A stretch of DNA of 64,000 nucleotides from sequence record MT995927.1, one strand, 5' to 3'. Positions 2,418 through 62,776 of this stretch are shown piece by piece. Within the stretch, counting starts at the first letter, position 1. The number at the start of each line of letters is the position of its first letter. A program made the translations under genes and the position numbers. A model generated the notes under the pieces. It was not told the DNA's origin and ran no database searches. It saw nothing but the letters and a program-made list of their open reading frames with translations.

Positions 2418-3077
2418 ATGACTAACACCTTTGAGAAGATGTCAGGCGACAAAGATAGAAAAAGTCGTCCAGAAATCGTACTGCGTTTGCTGATCGCAAC
2501 CAGTTTTCCTCAATCCGTTTTAGCCGATTTGACTTTTGATATTACTAAGCAAGTTGGTATTACTGATAACGATGAATTAGAGAAGATTGCTAATGACATG
2601 CGTGATGTTGAACGTAAGTTTGACATGACTGATTTCGTTAGATGTATTGATCTACGTCGTAATGGTAATGACGTAAATATAACTGTTAATTGTTGGGATT
2701 TTGATCCACGTGCTAAAACTATCGAGGATCGTGCGGAGAACCATGAATTCCTGGCAAACAGTAATATTACCTTACATTCACCAGAAGCAGATTTTAATGA
2801 TCCACGTGAACTGGCTAGTAAATTAGTTGGACTATTTTTTCGTAGCAAGATAGGTCAAAAGCCGTCAGCTAGTAATTTTACTAAGGGATGGAAAATTCTT
2901 AGTAAACCAATTAGTAAATCTAAAAATACAGGTGATATAGAATCAATCGATCTAGTTGATGCTATTGAACTAGTAGCTCAGAGTTTAGCTAAACGTAGAT
3001 TTAACATTAAAATTACCACAAGCGCTATTTTATTACTTGATCAGAAAAGACGGTTATTTAATATAACGCGTGGTTAA
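2418..3077 (+). CDS. hypothetical phage protein
   Basis: 219 aa ORF ending at a convergent terminator. Confidence 0.8.
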   Translation: MTNTFEKMSGDKDRKSRPEIVLRLLIATSFPQSVLADLTFDITKQVGITDNDELEKIANDMRDVERKFDMTDFVRCIDLRRNGNDVNITVNCWDFDPRAKTIEDRAENHEFLANSNITLHSPEADFNDPRELASKLVGLFFRSKIGQKPSASNFTKGWKILSKPISKSKNTGDIESIDLVDAIELVAQSLAKRRFNIKITTSAILLLDQKRRLFNITRG

Positions 3078-5559: not shown

Positions 5560-7671
5560 TTAAAACCGCATATATGCGGGCTGATATGGTTTATACATAC
5601 GTGTATCAAAGTCATTAAAATCAATTGCGATATCATACTTCTCAAATGATTCTTTTAGCATCTGATAAATGATTTTATTTTCATCAAAATTATTATTTTT
5701 ATCAACATAACTTTCTAATGACTCTGTGATCTCAAATGGAGATTTAATACCCATAATAGCTTCAACCATTGCCTGACTCCATTTTAGAATGTCATCTGAC
5801 CTTGTTGAGATATTCGGTTCATCTTCTGTATCGAGAGTACATTGATATACGACTGTTTGTGAATCCTGACCTTTACGGTAAATTCGAGCAATAGCTTGTT
5901 CTAGAATGTAATGCCTAAACGGTGAATTAATTGTCACCATAGTATCAGCCATCGTCATACGGACCGCTGTTGAAAGGGAAGCATATGTAGCTACCAATGG
6001 ATTTAATTTAGGGTCTTTCTCAAATCTACTGATTATTTGAGGTAAATTGTCATTGGTTTTACCATACACCACCGCCGGATGCATACCTAATTTATTGGTG
6101 TACTTATCAACAGTATCAACAACCTCAACAAACGATGTAAATGCAATCGTTTTCTTCATAGTTGATTCAGTGATACCAACCCAGTCAATATACGGTACCA
6201 TGTCCACATGGCACTGAATGCGTTTAGCACCTAAAACCCTTCCCAAACATTCACCTTGTATCTTTAGCATAACGTATTTTATAACTGATTTAATATCTCT
6301 AAAAGCAGCTATTACATTACGAGGTAAAGTTGGCTCTATAAACATTTTTTCATATTGGTTAGATTCTTTAATTTCTTCACCAATGTATCGCGGGTCTTGA
6401 TTCTTCTGAATTATTTTAATCAAATTCTTATAGCGAGCGAAACCATCTTTCTGCGCCTGGGTCTTAAGAGAGTTCTCGTGTATCGCCATTAGTTTAGCCC
6501 AATACTTCTCATCTTCTGGTCGGCGCGCAGCATAGAACTTTACACGTTCTCTAATAAAAGCTTCACAATCACGTTTAATGGCATTAAGAGTATACTGTGA
6601 TCCATTTGGTATCTTGATACGATACGCTTTTATCCTCGGTGGTAAAACCTCAGTATCTTTCTTTTCAATGACGTACGCAATTAACCCAAAGCGATGTTGG
6701 ACAATATCTAATCCTTTCTGTGTCTCTTTTCCAAATGCTTTCTTAAAACGTTCTTCAACCTCATTGGTGAAGAGATCGTCTAATACTCTTAATGCACTTA
6801 CTAATTCAGAACCAAGTGCTTTAACAGGGGTACCTGACGCTAATAATCTGTTATTAGAGTTAGACATAAAACATATTTGCTGGAACTTAAGAGATTGTGC
6901 AGAATTAGGATCGTTCATATTGTGTGATTCATCCAGAATCACCGTAATGTTCTTACCTTTGAATATACCGCTTCTTAATAGATCAATTATTTTATCTTGC
7001 GCCTGGTAATGGGATATAAGTATTCTTTGACCGTTGTAGGCTTTATCATCAATGGTCGACCATACTTTTTGTCTTTCCTTATACATCTCAATAATAGATG
7101 GCTTCCATATTAGATCAATAGACTTCTTTTCACAAACAACTATAATGATATCCGACTCAACCATTTCAGCAATAGCCATCGTCATGAATGTTTTACCAGT
7201 ACCAGGTTTACCTGCAACAATATCACCACGTAAACCATACTGGTCAATTCGATAATTATAATTTTCAAAATAAGCTTTTTGAGACTCATCTGGTGTAAAT
7301 GTCAATTTGTCTAACATCTTGAAATTGAGTCTACCTGGTACAGAGTTGGTATCTACAGGACGAGTATTTTTTAACCAGGTATATTGAAGCATTGCTTCAC
7401 GGATGGCATTAACAGTTTTAATAGAGATGTATCTACTTCTATAATTCTTTACTGCTTCTAGCATGTAATATATTTCAGGAGCAAAGAATTTATAAAATGA
7501 AATACTACGACGACTAACCGTGTTAAATAACTGCGTAGCTAATTTAGTGGTTCGCCAATACTTGTTAATATCTCTAATGAATGCAGCACCATCAAAACCA
7601 CTGATGATAATTTCTTGATCAGTTTCAGTAATTGATAGCGAGCCCATTAGCTTCCTAAATGAGTCTATCAT
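5560..7671 (-). CDS. SNF2/SF2 family helicase (phiKZ gp203-like)
   Basis: Walker A GKPGTGKT, DESH, motif III ASGTP, motif VI QAIARIYRKGQ. Confidence 0.9.
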   Translation of the reverse strand: MIDSFRKLMGSLSITETDQEIIISGFDGAAFIRDINKYWRTTKLATQLFNTVSRRSISFYKFFAPEIYYMLEAVKNYRSRYISIKTVNAIREAMLQYTWLKNTRPVDTNSVPGRLNFKMLDKLTFTPDESQKAYFENYNYRIDQYGLRGDIVAGKPGTGKTFMTMAIAEMVESDIIIVVCEKKSIDLIWKPSIIEMYKERQKVWSTIDDKAYNGQRILISHYQAQDKIIDLLRSGIFKGKNITVILDESHNMNDPNSAQSLKFQQICFMSNSNNRLLASGTPVKALGSELVSALRVLDDLFTNEVEERFKKAFGKETQKGLDIVQHRFGLIAYVIEKKDTEVLPPRIKAYRIKIPNGSQYTLNAIKRDCEAFIRERVKFYAARRPEDEKYWAKLMAIHENSLKTQAQKDGFARYKNLIKIIQKNQDPRYIGEEIKESNQYEKMFIEPTLPRNVIAAFRDIKSVIKYVMLKIQGECLGRVLGAKRIQCHVDMVPYIDWVGITESTMKKTIAFTSFVEVVDTVDKYTNKLGMHPAVVYGKTNDNLPQIISRFEKDPKLNPLVATYASLSTAVRMTMADTMVTINSPFRHYILEQAIARIYRKGQDSQTVVYQCTLDTEDEPNISTRSDDILKWSQAMVEAIMGIKSPFEITESLESYVDKNNNFDENKIIYQMLKESFEKYDIAIDFNDFDTRMYKPYQPAYMRF

Positions 7672-7690
7672 TGCATTTTTCCTTAAGGGG

Positions 7691-7938
7691 TATGTAAATA
7701 TAACTCTAAGTCATAAGATTAGCTAACGAATAAAAATACGCACAGTGCAATGATATAGAGCAAGGCAGTTTGCGTAAAACGCACTGCACTTTAAGGGGGT
7801 GATCCAGTCGTAAATAAACCGGGGTACTAAAGTATCGTCAGGAACGACACGAACCCCAACTACGGTGCCTTGCTACTCACCGACCTCTAGATAGGGGTCG
7901 GACCTATTACATTAAAGGAGCCCACCAGGGGCTCCTTT
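7691..7938 (+). ncRNA. candidate structured ncRNA (~245 nt)
   Basis: ORF-less GC-rich island starting at TATGTAAA; stems 7744-49/7785-90, 7759-67/7866-74, 7821-25/7853-57, 7880-88/7893-901; ends at a terminator. Confidence 0.6.
7914..7938. terminator. bidirectional terminator
   Basis: AAAGGAGCCC-ACCAG-GGGCTCCTTT. Confidence 0.85.
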
Positions 7939-7967
7939 ATGCCATTCATTATAAATTAATTTAAATC

Positions 7968-7975
7968 TATATTAC
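7968..7975 (+). promoter_or_regulatory. phiKZ-type early promoter
   Basis: TATATTAC with AT-rich upstream sequence, ~45 nt before the 8022 ORF. Confidence 0.75.
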
Positions 7976-8021
7976 AGGATTACCATAAAGATATTTATCC
8001 TTTTATAATGAGGAAAAGATT

Positions 8022-8417
8022 ATGTCCGATATTAATAGCACCAATGTAACAGATGAATTAGTACCTTATTTTCCATCGGCGGATGCCATTACTAGTTCTA
8101 CTATTAGGGATGAAGTAATTCCTAATATTTTGTTATTCTACAAGAATGCTTTTAGTGACTTCCAACACGTTAGTAATATCACAGGTACTAACCAGATTGC
8201 ATCAGGTTATTTACCAGGTGTAGGTTATTATTTCGAGTATAGTGTTACCGGTAATGCTAATCTTATTCCACCTGAAGCAATTAAAGTATTACGTAATGTA
8301 ATCACTAAAAATGGATATAAAGATGACATTACCATCACACCAAAAGGTTTTGGCCTAATCAATTGGTTCATTGTAAGAGTATACGTAGATGAGCAAATTA
8401 AGAAGACTACTCAATAA
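8022..8417 (+). CDS. hypothetical early protein
   Basis: 131 aa, GAGGA SD, first gene after an early promoter. Confidence 0.8.
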   Translation: MSDINSTNVTDELVPYFPSADAITSSTIRDEVIPNILLFYKNAFSDFQHVSNITGTNQIASGYLPGVGYYFEYSVTGNANLIPPEAIKVLRNVITKNGYKDDITITPKGFGLINWFIVRVYVDEQIKKTTQ

Positions 8418-19791: not shown

Positions 19792-20190
19792 ATGAAAATC
19801 TATGGTTCTTCTTTTCATGAGGTCACACTAGAATATGGAAAACCCTTTATACGCAATGGGGTTTTAAAACATTTACCTGATCTAGGTACACCAGACTTAG
19901 GATGGACTGATTTTAATATCCTTGAAATTATTCCAGGACCAGGTTATATCGATAAGAATACTCTAAACTTTTATAAAGAAAGAGATTGCTTATTTCCAGC
20001 AATCGTCAGGTTTACTGTATTTGAAGAAGAGCGTAATCGTATTATATCAACAATTAATGTTGATCTGGCGAAAAAGGAATTAGAGTGGAATAAGACTGAT
20101 CGTTTTTGGGAAATCGAAAACTTTGCAATTAGATTCCAATTAACTCAAAATCCTTATTCAGTTTTATGGGCATCCAATGGATCACTATAG
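19792..20190 (+). CDS. hypothetical protein
   Basis: 132 aa. Confidence 0.7.
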   Translation: MKIYGSSFHEVTLEYGKPFIRNGVLKHLPDLGTPDLGWTDFNILEIIPGPGYIDKNTLNFYKERDCLFPAIVRFTVFEEERNRIISTINVDLAKKELEWNKTDRFWEIENFAIRFQLTQNPYSVLWASNGSL

Positions 20191-26705: not shown

Positions 26706-27775
26706 TGGAACAATATCTTAATTCAATTCGTTTAGTTAAAGAACACGGTGTGCATAAAGGTGACCGTACTGGTACTGGTACTCAGAGCATGTTTGGTCAA
26801 CAAGAACGTTATAGTTTACGTAACAACGTTCTACCCGTAGTAACTACTAAGAAAATTCATCTTCCATCTGTTATCCATGAATTGTTCTGGATGCTTTCTG
26901 GTGATACTCGTGTAGATTATTTAATTGAAAATGGCGTACGCATTTGGAATGAATGGGTTAAACCAAATACCGCGATGTATCGTGAGTTAAATCAAGAAGA
27001 GCTTGACTCAGCTATTCTAAAGAAAGTTGGTGGTCCATTTGCTCTTTATTTCCATTCTCTAGATGATGACGTAATCATTTATACTAGAGATGATTTCGAG
27101 GTGTCTTTAAATAATGATGAGAAAGTTAGCTTTTGGAATCAATATCCAACCATTAATATCGAAGCTACCCATGTAGTTGGTGTTAACGCCGACCGCTGGA
27201 AGTTAGTATCTACTCTAGATTTCGATGAAAGTGTGACACCAGAACTAATTAAATATGAATATGGTAAACGACTATATAAATTGCTATTTGGTGTTAAGCC
27301 TCTAAAACTCATCGGGGGTGATCTAGGTGCCGTTTACGGTAAGACATGGCGTGATCTCGAAGATACCCGTGTGATCCCAAAACACGAGTGGGCTGTTTAC
27401 GAGGCACGTGGCTTTGACTTCGTAGTTGATATTCCAGGTACTTACATGGAGAATGATCGGTGTGTTGTAACACGTCGTATTGATCAAATTCAAGACGTGA
27501 TTGATCAACTTAAGACAAACCCTGATTCCCGTCGAATCATCGTTTGTGCGTGGTCACCGCAACTCGTTGATGAACAGGCGCTCCCACCATGTCATAGCTT
27601 CTTTCAGTTCTGGACTCGTGAACTGACGCTAGAAGAACGGTATGACTGGGTCAAACTTAACGACACTGAAGCTCAACGTATTTTCCTTGAAGGTGCGCAA
27701 CCGGAAACTGATCACGCACTGTGGGATAAACTTGGTGTTCCTAAACGTGCATTGAGCTGCCAGCTCTACCAGCGT
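26705..27775 (+). CDS. thyA: thymidylate synthase, exon 1
   Basis: DRTGTGT, PVVTTKK, IWNEW, GDLGAVYG, DQIQ, SRRIIVCAW, ALPPCH (catalytic Cys), LSCQLYQR. Confidence 0.95.
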
Positions 27776-28865
27776 TAAATACTAGCGCCTTCTAGGAGCA
27801 ATCCTAGTCGAATAACCTATCTAAACGGGGAAACTCTCTATGAGACAATCCCGTGCTAAATTGACTACGGTCATAAATGCCTAACGACTATCGAAACCAC
27901 TCTGAGAAGAGGAAGGGAGTAGAGTAGGACCAAGTGGTCCGAAAAGGTAGGGGTCTCTTTTTAAGAGATCGTGATATAGTCTGTCCTGCATGGAGACATG
28001 CAGCGGTTTACTTAATGACTCCGCCAGATAAGGAGGGTGTTATTAATGACGTAGCTTATGTGTATTGCCTATTCACCAAAGAAGGAAAGGTATATGTCGG
28101 AAGTGCGCGAGATTTAGTTAAGCGCGTTCAACGACATTTCAGAGACCTTAGTAATTCCAAGCACCATAACTACCCATTACAACAAGAATACGATAACGGT
28201 GAAAGATTCTCGTTAAAGTACTATCGTTGTGAAAGTCGGGAATCAGCATTTACACTCGAACAGATGTGGATAACCAAGCATGAAGAAGAAGGTAACCTTC
28301 TTAATATTGGTAGACACTCCAAGGGTGGTGATAACTTAACCAGGCATAACCTCAAAGAACAAATCATCGAGAAGCGGAGTGATACAATACGTATCAGACT
28401 TGATGAGATTGGAGCCGAGGCTCGTCAGGAAAAGTATGGTCGACCAGGTGAGCAGAATGGGATGTATGGTCGTACTCACACAGAAGAAGTTAAGGTAGCT
28501 CTATCCGAGTTACACACGGGTAACACTTACCGTCTTGGCATTAAAGCTAGTGATGAGACAAGAGCCAGGATGTCGGAGATAGCTTCTCAGAGAACAGGCG
28601 AACGTAATCCATTCTACGGTAAAACACATTCCGAAGAAACCAGAAAAAAGTTGGCGGATAACAAACGCGGTATAAAGCCAACTAACTCAAACAAACTTGA
28701 AGTGGACGGTGTTGTTTATTTATCCCAGGCCGATGCAGCTAAGGCTCTCGGAGTATCACAGGGTACAATAACATACCGAATTAACAGCAAGAATCCAAAG
28801 TATTCTGGTTATAAAGTCATTTAAGTAAACGGCTCAGGATTAACGACCCTGGGTGAACATAAGAG
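27776..28865 (+). mobile_element. group I intron (IA2, T4 td-like), 1090 nt
   Basis: Exon ends in U, intron ends in G; P1 GCGU|UA pairs with UAGCGC; td-like core CTATCTAAACGGGGAA..GACAATCCCGTGCTAAAT, AATGCCTAACGACTATC, GATATAGTCTG..CTGCATGG.GACATGCAGC, GATTAACGACC..TGAACATAAG; splicing restores YQR/SVDTFLG. Confidence 0.95.
28015..28824 (+). CDS. intron-encoded GIY-YIG homing endonuclease (I-TevI/I-BmoI-like)
   Basis: YVY..KVYVGSA.D..KR..RH, catalytic E and N positions, two NUMOD3 repeats (GMYGRTHTEE, PFYGKTHSEE), C-terminal HTH; start codon uncertain. Confidence 0.9.
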   Translation: MTPPDKEGVINDVAYVYCLFTKEGKVYVGSARDLVKRVQRHFRDLSNSKHHNYPLQQEYDNGERFSLKYYRCESRESAFTLEQMWITKHEEEGNLLNIGRHSKGGDNLTRHNLKEQIIEKRSDTIRIRLDEIGAEARQEKYGRPGEQNGMYGRTHTEEVKVALSELHTGNTYRLGIKASDETRARMSEIASQRTGERNPFYGKTHSEETRKKLADNKRGIKPTNSNKLEVDGVVYLSQADAAKALGVSQGTITYRINSKNPKYSGYKVI

Positions 28866-62699: not shown

Positions 62700-62776
62700 T
62701 GGTGCCGCCACTCCGAATCGAACGGAGGACCTACGCATTACAAGTGCGTTGCTCTACCTAGCTGAGCTATAGCGGC
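62700..62776 (-). tRNA. trnT: tRNA-Thr(UGU) with encoded CCA
   Basis: Acceptor GCCGCUA/UGGCGGC-A-CCA, D-arm AGCUCAGCUAGGUAGAGC, anticodon loop CUUGUAA, T-loop GUUCGAUUC. Confidence 0.97.

Follow-up and report, generated by a model that had tools for sequence, protein, structure and literature searches.

Jumbo phages that infect Pseudomonas carry a small gene for a structured noncoding RNA (ncRNA), one strand of which is complementary to the 3' end of 16S ribosomal RNA (rRNA). We describe it here in phage phiKZ, from a stretch of 64,000 nucleotides (nt) of sequence record MT995927.1 (hereafter the window), where it lies on the plus strand between two divergent genes, gp203 and gp204. The element is a ~150–190-nt ncRNA gene and, judged by sequence comparison, represents a real, conserved family of structured RNAs of a new class. 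Compensatory substitutions maintain its helices, and an invariant strand between two of them pairs without gaps with the part of 16S rRNA that holds the anti-Shine–Dalgarno (anti-SD) tail. Tentatively, and at a little under an even chance, we favor the reading that this RNA acts in trans as an antisense to the 16S 3' end and captures or silences small ribosomal subunits.

A structured RNA family with covarying helices

The window is phiKZ DNA, with 100% identity to AF399011 over positions 7600–8100 by sequence match (AF399011 coordinate = window position + 205,096). The element occupies a 350-nt gap (7672–8021) between gp203, a SNF2/ResIII helicase gene on the minus strand (5560–7671), and gp204, on the plus strand from 8022. 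This gap holds no open reading frame (ORF) of at least 30 amino acids (aa) and is unannotated in every annotated phage record listed; three further listed records carry no annotation at all. G+C content is 0.45–0.53 over 7750–7950 versus ~0.33 in the flanks. The plus strand of 7691–7945 folds at -79 kcal/mol (z = -4.4), a stability reached by 0 of 200 shuffles, and the minus strand gives z = -3.1. A first-pass annotation, made from the letters of the window, had described a GC-rich island between divergent units and an ORF-less, structured plus-strand RNA ending in a terminator. That description holds, and a sequence check found all of its stems and coordinates exact.

The same annotation could place the RNA in no known class, and comparison with Rfam 15 agrees. 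At gathering score, no family matches the element; at E values up to 10, the element region gives only chance-level matches of 16–20 bits. Twelve related loci also lack an Rfam match.

Homologs define a family across Pseudomonas jumbo phages. BLAST matched parts of this gap in the phages PhiPA3, 201phi2-1, Phabio and the PS119XW group, each match falling within an unannotated gap of ~260–320 nt. Alignment with these relatives delimits a conserved core from ~7740 to 7880, plus the terminator, and 7691–7740 is conserved in no relative. We added metagenomic jumbo-phage contigs by pattern scans of IMG/VR and built a covariance model, R1, from eight sequences. R1 finds exactly one copy in the window, at 7758–7875 on the plus strand (102 bits, E 5e-22), which is the core span used below. 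It also finds copies in six genera of Pseudomonas jumbo phages (the named phages besides phiKZ being PhiPA3, 201phi2-1, Phabio, PS119XW and Psa21) and in 12 IMG/VR contigs. Sequences outside the training set are recovered as well, namely Psa21 (56 bits) and contigs L044, L068, L075, L181, L117, L121, L148, L145 and L112. The homolog in P. aeruginosa phage pPa_SNUABM_DT01 (hereafter DT01) is a BLAST match read by eye, without an R1 score. Contig L171 shares the divergent layout of phiKZ, and its helicase is 55% identical to gp203. The DNA polymerase of L117 is 45–48% identical to chimallivirus DNA polymerases, by which we judge L117 to be a distant chimallivirus. Every family member of known host infects Pseudomonas.

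Four helices, P1 to P4, organize the core. The closing stem P1 pairs AGCAAGGCA (7759–7767) with TGCCTTGCT (7866–7874). It shows double changes at six of eight modeled pairs across the family, with variants such as GTGTTGGTAG/CTACCAACAC in L145 and ACAGGT/ACCTGT in L112, and it forms in each of 18 sequences folded individually. Hairpin P2 (7765–7787) has an outer GCAG/CTGC stem (7765–7768 with 7784–7787) and an inner TGCG-TAAAA-CGCA hairpin (7771–7783). All four of its modeled pairs covary, as in GTAC/GTAC of L181 versus GCAG/CTGC of L044. P1 and P2 overlap by 3 nt in phiKZ (7765–7767), and 2–4 nt are competed for in all homologs examined, a competition seen in phiKZ at first pass.

The P3 domain (7821–7857) is closed by GGGGT (7821–7825; CGGGGT from 7820) and ACCCC (7853–7857). 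It encloses hairpins at 7823–7836 and 7837–7848, the second at the position of P4 in relatives, where P4 is usually capped by a GNGA tetraloop (GGGA, GAGA, GCGA or GUGA). All five P3 pairs and all three P4 pairs covary, and P3 appears as GATAC/GTATC, GGTAC/GTACC, GGGGT/ACCCC, GGAACG/CGTTCC and GGAGTG/CACTCC. Two single strands complete the core. The invariant junction strand UAAGGGGGUGAUCCAGUCGUA (7792–7812) joins P2 to P3, and the segment J3/1, AACUACGG, leads into the 3' strand of P1, TGCCTTGCT (together 7858–7874). Beyond the core lies P5, a predicted 9-base-pair (bp) hairpin at 7880–7901. A hairpin recurs at this place in five close relatives (PhiPA3, 201phi2-1, Phabio, PS119XW and L055), as read by eye and with a sequence other than that of phiKZ. 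In G+C-rich relatives the terminator follows P1 directly.

Across 18 distinct sequences, 90% of P1–P4 cells are paired, compared with 30–41% when the 3' partner is slid by one to three columns, in an alignment that was fitted to the model and thus favors the structure. Eighteen of 20 pairs changed on both sides, and none of 500 shuffles reached the observed values. We used the model-based alignment because MAFFT, applied to the full set, puts the 3' strand of P1 in the wrong place for some members. Despite this fitting, the effect size and the individual cases in P1, P2 and P3 argue that the helices are real. The first-pass annotation had named covariation among homologs as one way to check the fold, and P1, P2 and P3 are borne out by compensatory changes. 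A 3-bp mini-hairpin that RNAalifold places within the invariant strand falls in invariant columns and was left out of the pair counts.

The ends of the RNA are predicted from conserved signals. Upstream lies a predicted middle-type promoter (7732–7758, plus strand), AAAAATAC, whose C stands 19 nt ahead of the G of TATAG. AT-rich relatives have an A-rich run with TAC followed by ATATAG, the G again 19 nt after the C, and neither TAC nor ATATAG varies among them. The same architecture, an A-rich run with (T/G)TAC and 19 nt from the C to the start G, occurs in the published phiKZ middle promoters P005, P014 and P038. From this shared spacing, we infer a transcription start site (TSS) at G7758 (±2). 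At the other end, a terminator hairpin (7914–7938, with its tail reaching 7943) comprises 10 bp, the loop ACCAG and then TTTATGCC. Its stem shows compensatory changes across relatives, and the tail TTTATGCC also follows the published phiKZ terminator T093. The whole predicted ncRNA thus spans 7758–7943 on the plus strand, ~186 nt.

Published ONT-cappable-seq data contain one transcript end within the element. T095, a plus-strand 3' end at AF399011 213001, corresponds to window position 7905, 4 nt beyond P5, and belongs to no transcription unit. As the gene before it is encoded on the minus strand, T095 independently supports transcription of the element from the plus strand, and an RNA ending there would be a shorter form of ~148 nt. 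T095 is the sole transcript evidence on record. Neither the phiKZ ncRNA table of Putzeys et al. nor the Grad-seq, dRNA-seq and antisense-oligomer papers include the RNA itself.

These ends revise several first-pass proposals. Its start at TATGTAAA (7691–7698) falls in the unconserved segment, and its late timing gives way to a probable middle one, as the conserved promoter is middle-type. A proposed pseudoknot of AGTGCA (7744–7749) with TGCACT (7785–7790) has its 5' arm upstream of the predicted start, and PhiPA3, Phabio and PS119XW lack the pairing. The RNA had also been called antisense to the helicase leader. The late promoter of gp203, P107, has its published TSS at window position 7712 on the minus strand, so the leader covers 7712–7672, and an RNA that begins near 7758 falls outside it.

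Complementarity to the 3' end of 16S rRNA

The feature that we consider most informative, and that the first-pass annotation missed, is the match of the junction strand to 16S rRNA. As a target we used the last 82 nt of Pseudomonas 16S rRNA, a sequence present without mismatch in more than 120 contigs of Pseudomonadaceae, among them P. paraeruginosa, P. nitroreducens and Stutzerimonas. PhiKZ 7792–7812 forms 21 gapless pairs with 16S positions 1522–1542, 18 of them Watson–Crick and three G–U. The footprint spans the anti-SD tail (1530–1542) and reaches into helix 45 along its 3' strand. All 19 members examined have a gapless run of 14–21 pairs ending at 16S position 1541 or 1542, while shuffled sequences average a run of ~8 against the last 46 nt of 16S. 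In L044, L068, L075 and L181, pairing extends through the loop of helix 45 to ~27 bp with one bulge. We relied on gapless runs and set aside RNAduplex energy z-scores, which are not evidence here because very large interior loops inflate the shuffled values.

Sequence change within the block follows the pairing. AGG(G/A)GGTGATCCA is identical in all members and is the sole long invariant stretch of the RNA, 100% kept where nearly everything else has diverged. Opposite 16S 1528–1541, substitutions are limited to G/A facing U1537 and U1541, which keep the pair. Opposite G1525–G1526 the RNA has mostly C or U, with A in DT01. Phabio departs furthest, with mismatches opposite 1525–1527. This substitution pattern is what a fixed pairing partner would allow.

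The calculated duplexes are strong, at -37 kcal/mol for the 21-mer and -23 kcal/mol for 14 nt on the free tail (1529–1542). SD sites of phiKZ genes in the window have a median of -5.6 kcal/mol versus -0.9 kcal/mol at random sites. The block lies in the junction between covarying helices, and forcing it open costs 2.5–8.4 kcal/mol. It resembles an SD sequence, has neither a start codon at usable distance nor an ORF behind it, and we count this in favor of an antisense role.

A second segment shows a weaker, colinear resemblance to the same region of rRNA. J3/1 (AACUACGG) together with the 3' strand of P1 resembles the antisense of 16S 1498–1514, for example as CTACGGTACCTTGT in L171 compared with CTACGGCTACCTTGT. 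Local alignment gives p ~0.013 for phiKZ and 0.000–0.033 in seven members including phiKZ, the others being non-significant, so we regard this second block as suggestive only. The 5' strand of P1, AGCAAGGCA, resembles 16S 1499–1506 in sense. Compared with the reverse complement of 16S 1525–1542, the main block is identical at 17 of 18 positions in PhiPA3 and the L044 group and at 16 of 18 in phiKZ, and no rDNA similarity extends beyond the two blocks. The second block fits an origin of the RNA as an antisense copy of the rRNA 3' end in which P3/P4 replaced the top of helix 45. With it, the base of helix 45 could also be invaded from two sides.

We looked for counterparts matched to another rRNA type and for targets other than rRNA. 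The 16S 3' region differs in Enterobacterales, where it reads GGUUGG and the corresponding block would be of CCAAC type. BLAST returned no homologs of this type, and R1 recovered no member among the CCAAC-type loci listed from viral contigs, where it covered L207–L293 of 118 loci (L207–L324). An opposite-sense phage target is likewise lacking, with no site complementary to the block in the 64-kb window at up to three mismatches. Two side observations came from the CCAAC-type search. The single long match, in the poorly annotated record of Aeromonas phage AP1 (L456, 1266–1527), is a piece of an rrn operon (16S 3' end, tRNA-Ile and tRNA-Ala) among fragmentary gene calls and looks like an assembly chimera or a captured host fragment. 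Several other phage-collection records are plain bacterial 16S-bearing sequences.

The motif is not confined to this family. In other phage contigs, real genes also use the 15-mer AAGGGGGTGATCCAG as their ribosome-binding site, and by a rough estimate a 15-mer may turn up many times by chance in a collection this large. Because AAGGGGGTGATCCAG occurs elsewhere, our argument rests on its conservation within the RNA family and not on the motif alone.

Other settings of the motif are of interest in their own right. AAGGGGGTGATCCAG stands in three further groups of IMG/VR contigs (L097, L114, L118, L127, L143, L165, L184, L196 and L203; L096 and L134; L135 and L182), in apparently noncoding, terminator-ended units whose flanks diverge around an unchanged 15-mer and which have no Rfam match. 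The P. aeruginosa phage PAK_P3 makes an unrelated 80-nt RNA (85937–86017), detected by ONT-cappable-seq, that carries AGGAGGUGAUCCAG, as does its counterpart in the tRNA clusters of Pakpunavirus. Within it (L453, ~377–457), AGGAGGTGATCCAG provides 14 nt complementary to 16S 1527–1540, and counterparts lie at ~380–450 in JG004 (L454) and C2-10_Ab02 (L455). Nankokuvirus and Pakpunavirus share this conserved segment, which lies within tRNA gene clusters and occurs in 164 P. aeruginosa phage records. This RNA may be an independent case of the same solution.

A candidate mechanism and its alternatives

If the RNA is antisense to 16S rRNA, it would be made in mid-infection from its middle-type promoter, would end at the P5 hairpin or at the terminator, and would target the 3' minor domain of 16S rRNA in trans. 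The invariant strand would be the docking site for the tail exposed on a 30S subunit or for 16S rRNA that is still nascent or immature. Pairing could then spread into the base of helix 45 as the 3' strand of P1 switches to the rRNA. The freed 5' strand of P1 would be absorbed by the extension of P2, which would give the conserved P1/P2 overlap a role. A bound subunit or precursor would be unable to use its anti-SD for initiation, and small subunits would be sequestered or inactivated, or their maturation blocked, in mid-infection. The outcome could thus be sequestration, inactivation or a maturation block, or else protection. That a dedicated structured antisense RNA captures, silences or reprograms small subunits, or blocks their maturation, is in our estimate possible, with the balance tilting mildly the other way.

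Most of what is known about how phages take over translation concerns proteins. In phiKZ, a model jumbo phage, a protein nucleus separates transcription from translation, and how host ribosomes are managed is an open question. If the antisense reading is true, a virus would control the ribosome by direct RNA–RNA pairing with rRNA at the site that selects mRNAs, and no natural RNA acting in trans on the anti-SD end of the ribosome would have been known before it. With a single small gene, a site of 21 nt and a defined target, the hypothesis is directly testable. Whatever its function, the element is a well-supported new structured RNA family that could enter RNA databases and correct phage annotations, such as a probably spurious ORF over the RNA in DT01.

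A number of points weigh against an antisense role. In the mature 30S subunit, 16S 1522–1529 and 1498–1514 are base-paired or buried. The RNA's own block is not clearly exposed in predicted ensembles (mean P(unpaired) 0.45 versus 0.38 elsewhere), where its G-run is often paired to C/U-runs close by. Because phiKZ genes use SD sites, blocking the anti-SD in general would also hurt the phage. Published ONT-cappable-seq called no plus-strand TSS for the RNA, and no ribosome association of it is reported in the literature. The published phiKZ Grad-seq, which sampled at 10 min after infection, does not report the RNA either; this sampling probably precedes firing of its middle promoter. The model-fitted covariation alignment described above must be counted here too, as must the known hosts, all of them Pseudomonas, which leave a single host 16S type behind the pairing comparison. 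In six chimalliviruses of hosts other than Pseudomonas (Goslar, RTH11, RP12, pEa_SNUABM_54, Desertfox and Moabite), no member lies within 4–20 kb of the helicase gene. Finally, the complementarity could be the relic of a captured rDNA fragment.

A relic of this kind is part of an explanation that we consider unlikely, in which the RNA is a structured ncRNA with some other partner, such as a phage or host protein or one of the phage RNA polymerases, the block is a protein-binding or tertiary-contact motif, and the 16S match is ancestral. Conserved helices with GNGA loops are typical of RNAs with tertiary or protein contacts. The partial occlusion of the block in predicted ensembles, the weak similarity of the second block to 16S in many members and the phage's own need for the anti-SD all point the same way. 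A relic would decay, however, whereas in these 19 sequences, despite a full turnover of the helices, 15 nt have kept their ability to pair. Moreover, the G-to-A and C-to-U changes are those expected for a fixed pairing partner, and the run stops precisely at the 16S 3' terminus. That terminus is central to a different proposal, which we think improbable, that the RNA pairs with the 16S 3' end to protect it from 3'-to-5' exonucleases and from endoribonuclease toxins of abortive infection. A duplex up to the final nucleotide would leave the exonucleases no single-stranded point of entry and would conceal the anti-SD from the toxins, which are single-strand-specific. Pairing reaches 1541 or 1542 in every member, leaving an overhang of 0–1 nt. 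RNase R is reported to degrade 30S subunits from the 16S 3' end (PMC10901742), and a MazF toxin is reported to remove the anti-SD (PMC12274833). Yet a shielded anti-SD would be unusable for initiation, near-stoichiometric amounts of RNA would be needed, no such defense is known to act on phiKZ, and the proposal rests on inference throughout.

Explanations that do not involve a trans-acting RNA fare worse. A cis-acting or DNA-level element (a leader or attenuator, a block of divergent promoters, or a replication or packaging signal) would suit a position between divergent genes, usually close to the helicase gene, with a 5' end that abuts the gp203 late promoter P107. The RNA is in fact usually near the helicase gene, but its orientation relative to the helicase and the downstream gene varies. 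It lies upstream of the helicase on the same strand in PhiPA3 and divergent from it in phiKZ, Psa21 and L171, and other genes intervene in 201phi2-1 and Phabio. Compensatory changes in four helices are the signature of a single-stranded RNA and not of DNA. Because neighbors and orientation vary while the element's own promoter, helices and terminator stay together, we hold such a role to be very unlikely; with the TSS as inferred, this is how an independent small RNA (sRNA) gene would behave. Least credible of all, to the point of being nearly negligible, is an mRNA for a very small peptide with an exceptionally strong SD site. The block is indeed a perfect extended SD-like sequence, and the same 15-mer serves real genes elsewhere, as in L100, where an ATG follows directly. 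Here, by contrast, ATG, GTG and TTG are absent 4–12 nt after the G-run, the only GTG overlaps the G-run itself, and the stretch behind it varies among relatives in length and frame, with four codons in phiKZ versus ten in PhiPA3. We also considered a sponge for RsmA/CsrA, which recognize a GGA core, and rejected it, as most members have GGGGG without that core.

Related systems and neighboring features

Full-text literature searches found no description of this RNA or of the concept. One of the nearest concepts is STAB-SD, the 5' stabilizer of Bacillus cryIIIA-type mRNAs reportedly described by Agaisse and Lereclus in 1996. Like the phiKZ RNA, STAB-SD is an SD-like sequence without a start codon and is thought to bind the 16S 3' end without being translated. 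It is, however, a short cis element in the 5' untranslated region (UTR) of the mRNA that it stabilizes, whereas the phiKZ RNA is separate, terminated and composed of several helices, and its 17–21 nt of complementarity extend beyond the anti-SD into helix 45. Nor does the element sit in a 5' UTR: its terminator and a phiKZ early-type promoter precede gp204, and the downstream genes vary among phages. Synthetic oligonucleotides and peptide nucleic acids directed at the 16S 3' end are said, in work from 1978 to 1998, to block formation of the initiation complex by occupying the anti-SD. They share their target site with the RNA but are artificial, unstructured and 8–15 nt long, and the literature searched describes no natural, phage-encoded, structured counterpart.

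The anti-SD is also covered by RMF, a ribosome-silencing factor. Bacteroidetes ribosomes sequester their own anti-SD (PMC7797042). In both cases, as proposed for the RNA, the anti-SD becomes unavailable and the choice of mRNAs that initiate is altered; the agents there are the cell's own proteins or rRNA–protein contacts, as opposed to a viral RNA. A fragment of archaeal Val-tRNA is a small-subunit-binding ncRNA that inhibits initiation (PMC11009984). It too is a small ncRNA acting on the small subunit, but it binds at the decoding site, is not antisense to the rRNA 3' end and is processed from a cellular tRNA, while the phage RNA has a dedicated viral gene. Small RNAs reported from jumbo phages include 5'UTR_gp40, 3'UTR_PHIKZ298 and sRNAgp182 of phiKZ and sRNA005 of 201phi2-1. 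These are small terminated transcripts of the same phages, and sRNA005 is also conserved between genera; they differ in locus and sequence, are 5'-UTR-derived and have no reported rRNA complementarity. The conserved jumbo-phage sRNA of Poppeliers et al. lies at a different locus, upstream of the gp182 homolog. One of three unnamed intergenic sRNAs of 201phi2-1 in the same study might be a homolog. The RNA thus belongs neither with STAB-SD nor with synthetic anti-tail oligonucleotides, proteins that cover the anti-SD or ribosome-binding tRNA fragments.

Several features near the RNA or its homologs deserve mention. After terminator stems of the phiKZ type, as at 7936–7945 and in T093, comes the tail (C)TT(T)ATGCC(G/A)T. 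It includes the late-promoter core TATG and is conserved throughout the RNA family. Between the terminator and gp204, TCTATATTAC (7966–7975, plus strand) resembles the core of phiKZ early promoters; published phiKZ TSS data assign no start to it, and the motif also occurs 3' of the RNA in Phabio and L011. In DT01 (L452, 2498–2620, minus strand), a 40-aa hypothetical protein, PA10_00263, is annotated opposite the RNA homolog and is probably spurious.

Two small units resemble the RNA gene in layout. Directly 5' of the helicase gene of Goslar (L325, ~19830–19965, plus strand) lies an ORF-less unit of ~125 nt with a TTAC...AATATAG promoter motif and an annotated terminator. It has no anti-16S block and no R1 match, and may be a diverged or replaced counterpart of the RNA. 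In L145 (~2945–3060, plus strand), a second small unit follows right after the RNA, with its own terminator, a different body and a promoter region, AGTATTTGTTTGTGTA...ATATAG, near-identical to that of the RNA.

Elsewhere in the window, the only Rfam 15 matches at gathering score are a group I catalytic intron at 27766–28003 on the plus strand (RF00028, 69.4 bits, a full-length model match) and a tRNA gene at 62703–62776 on the minus strand (RF00005, 67.8 bits).

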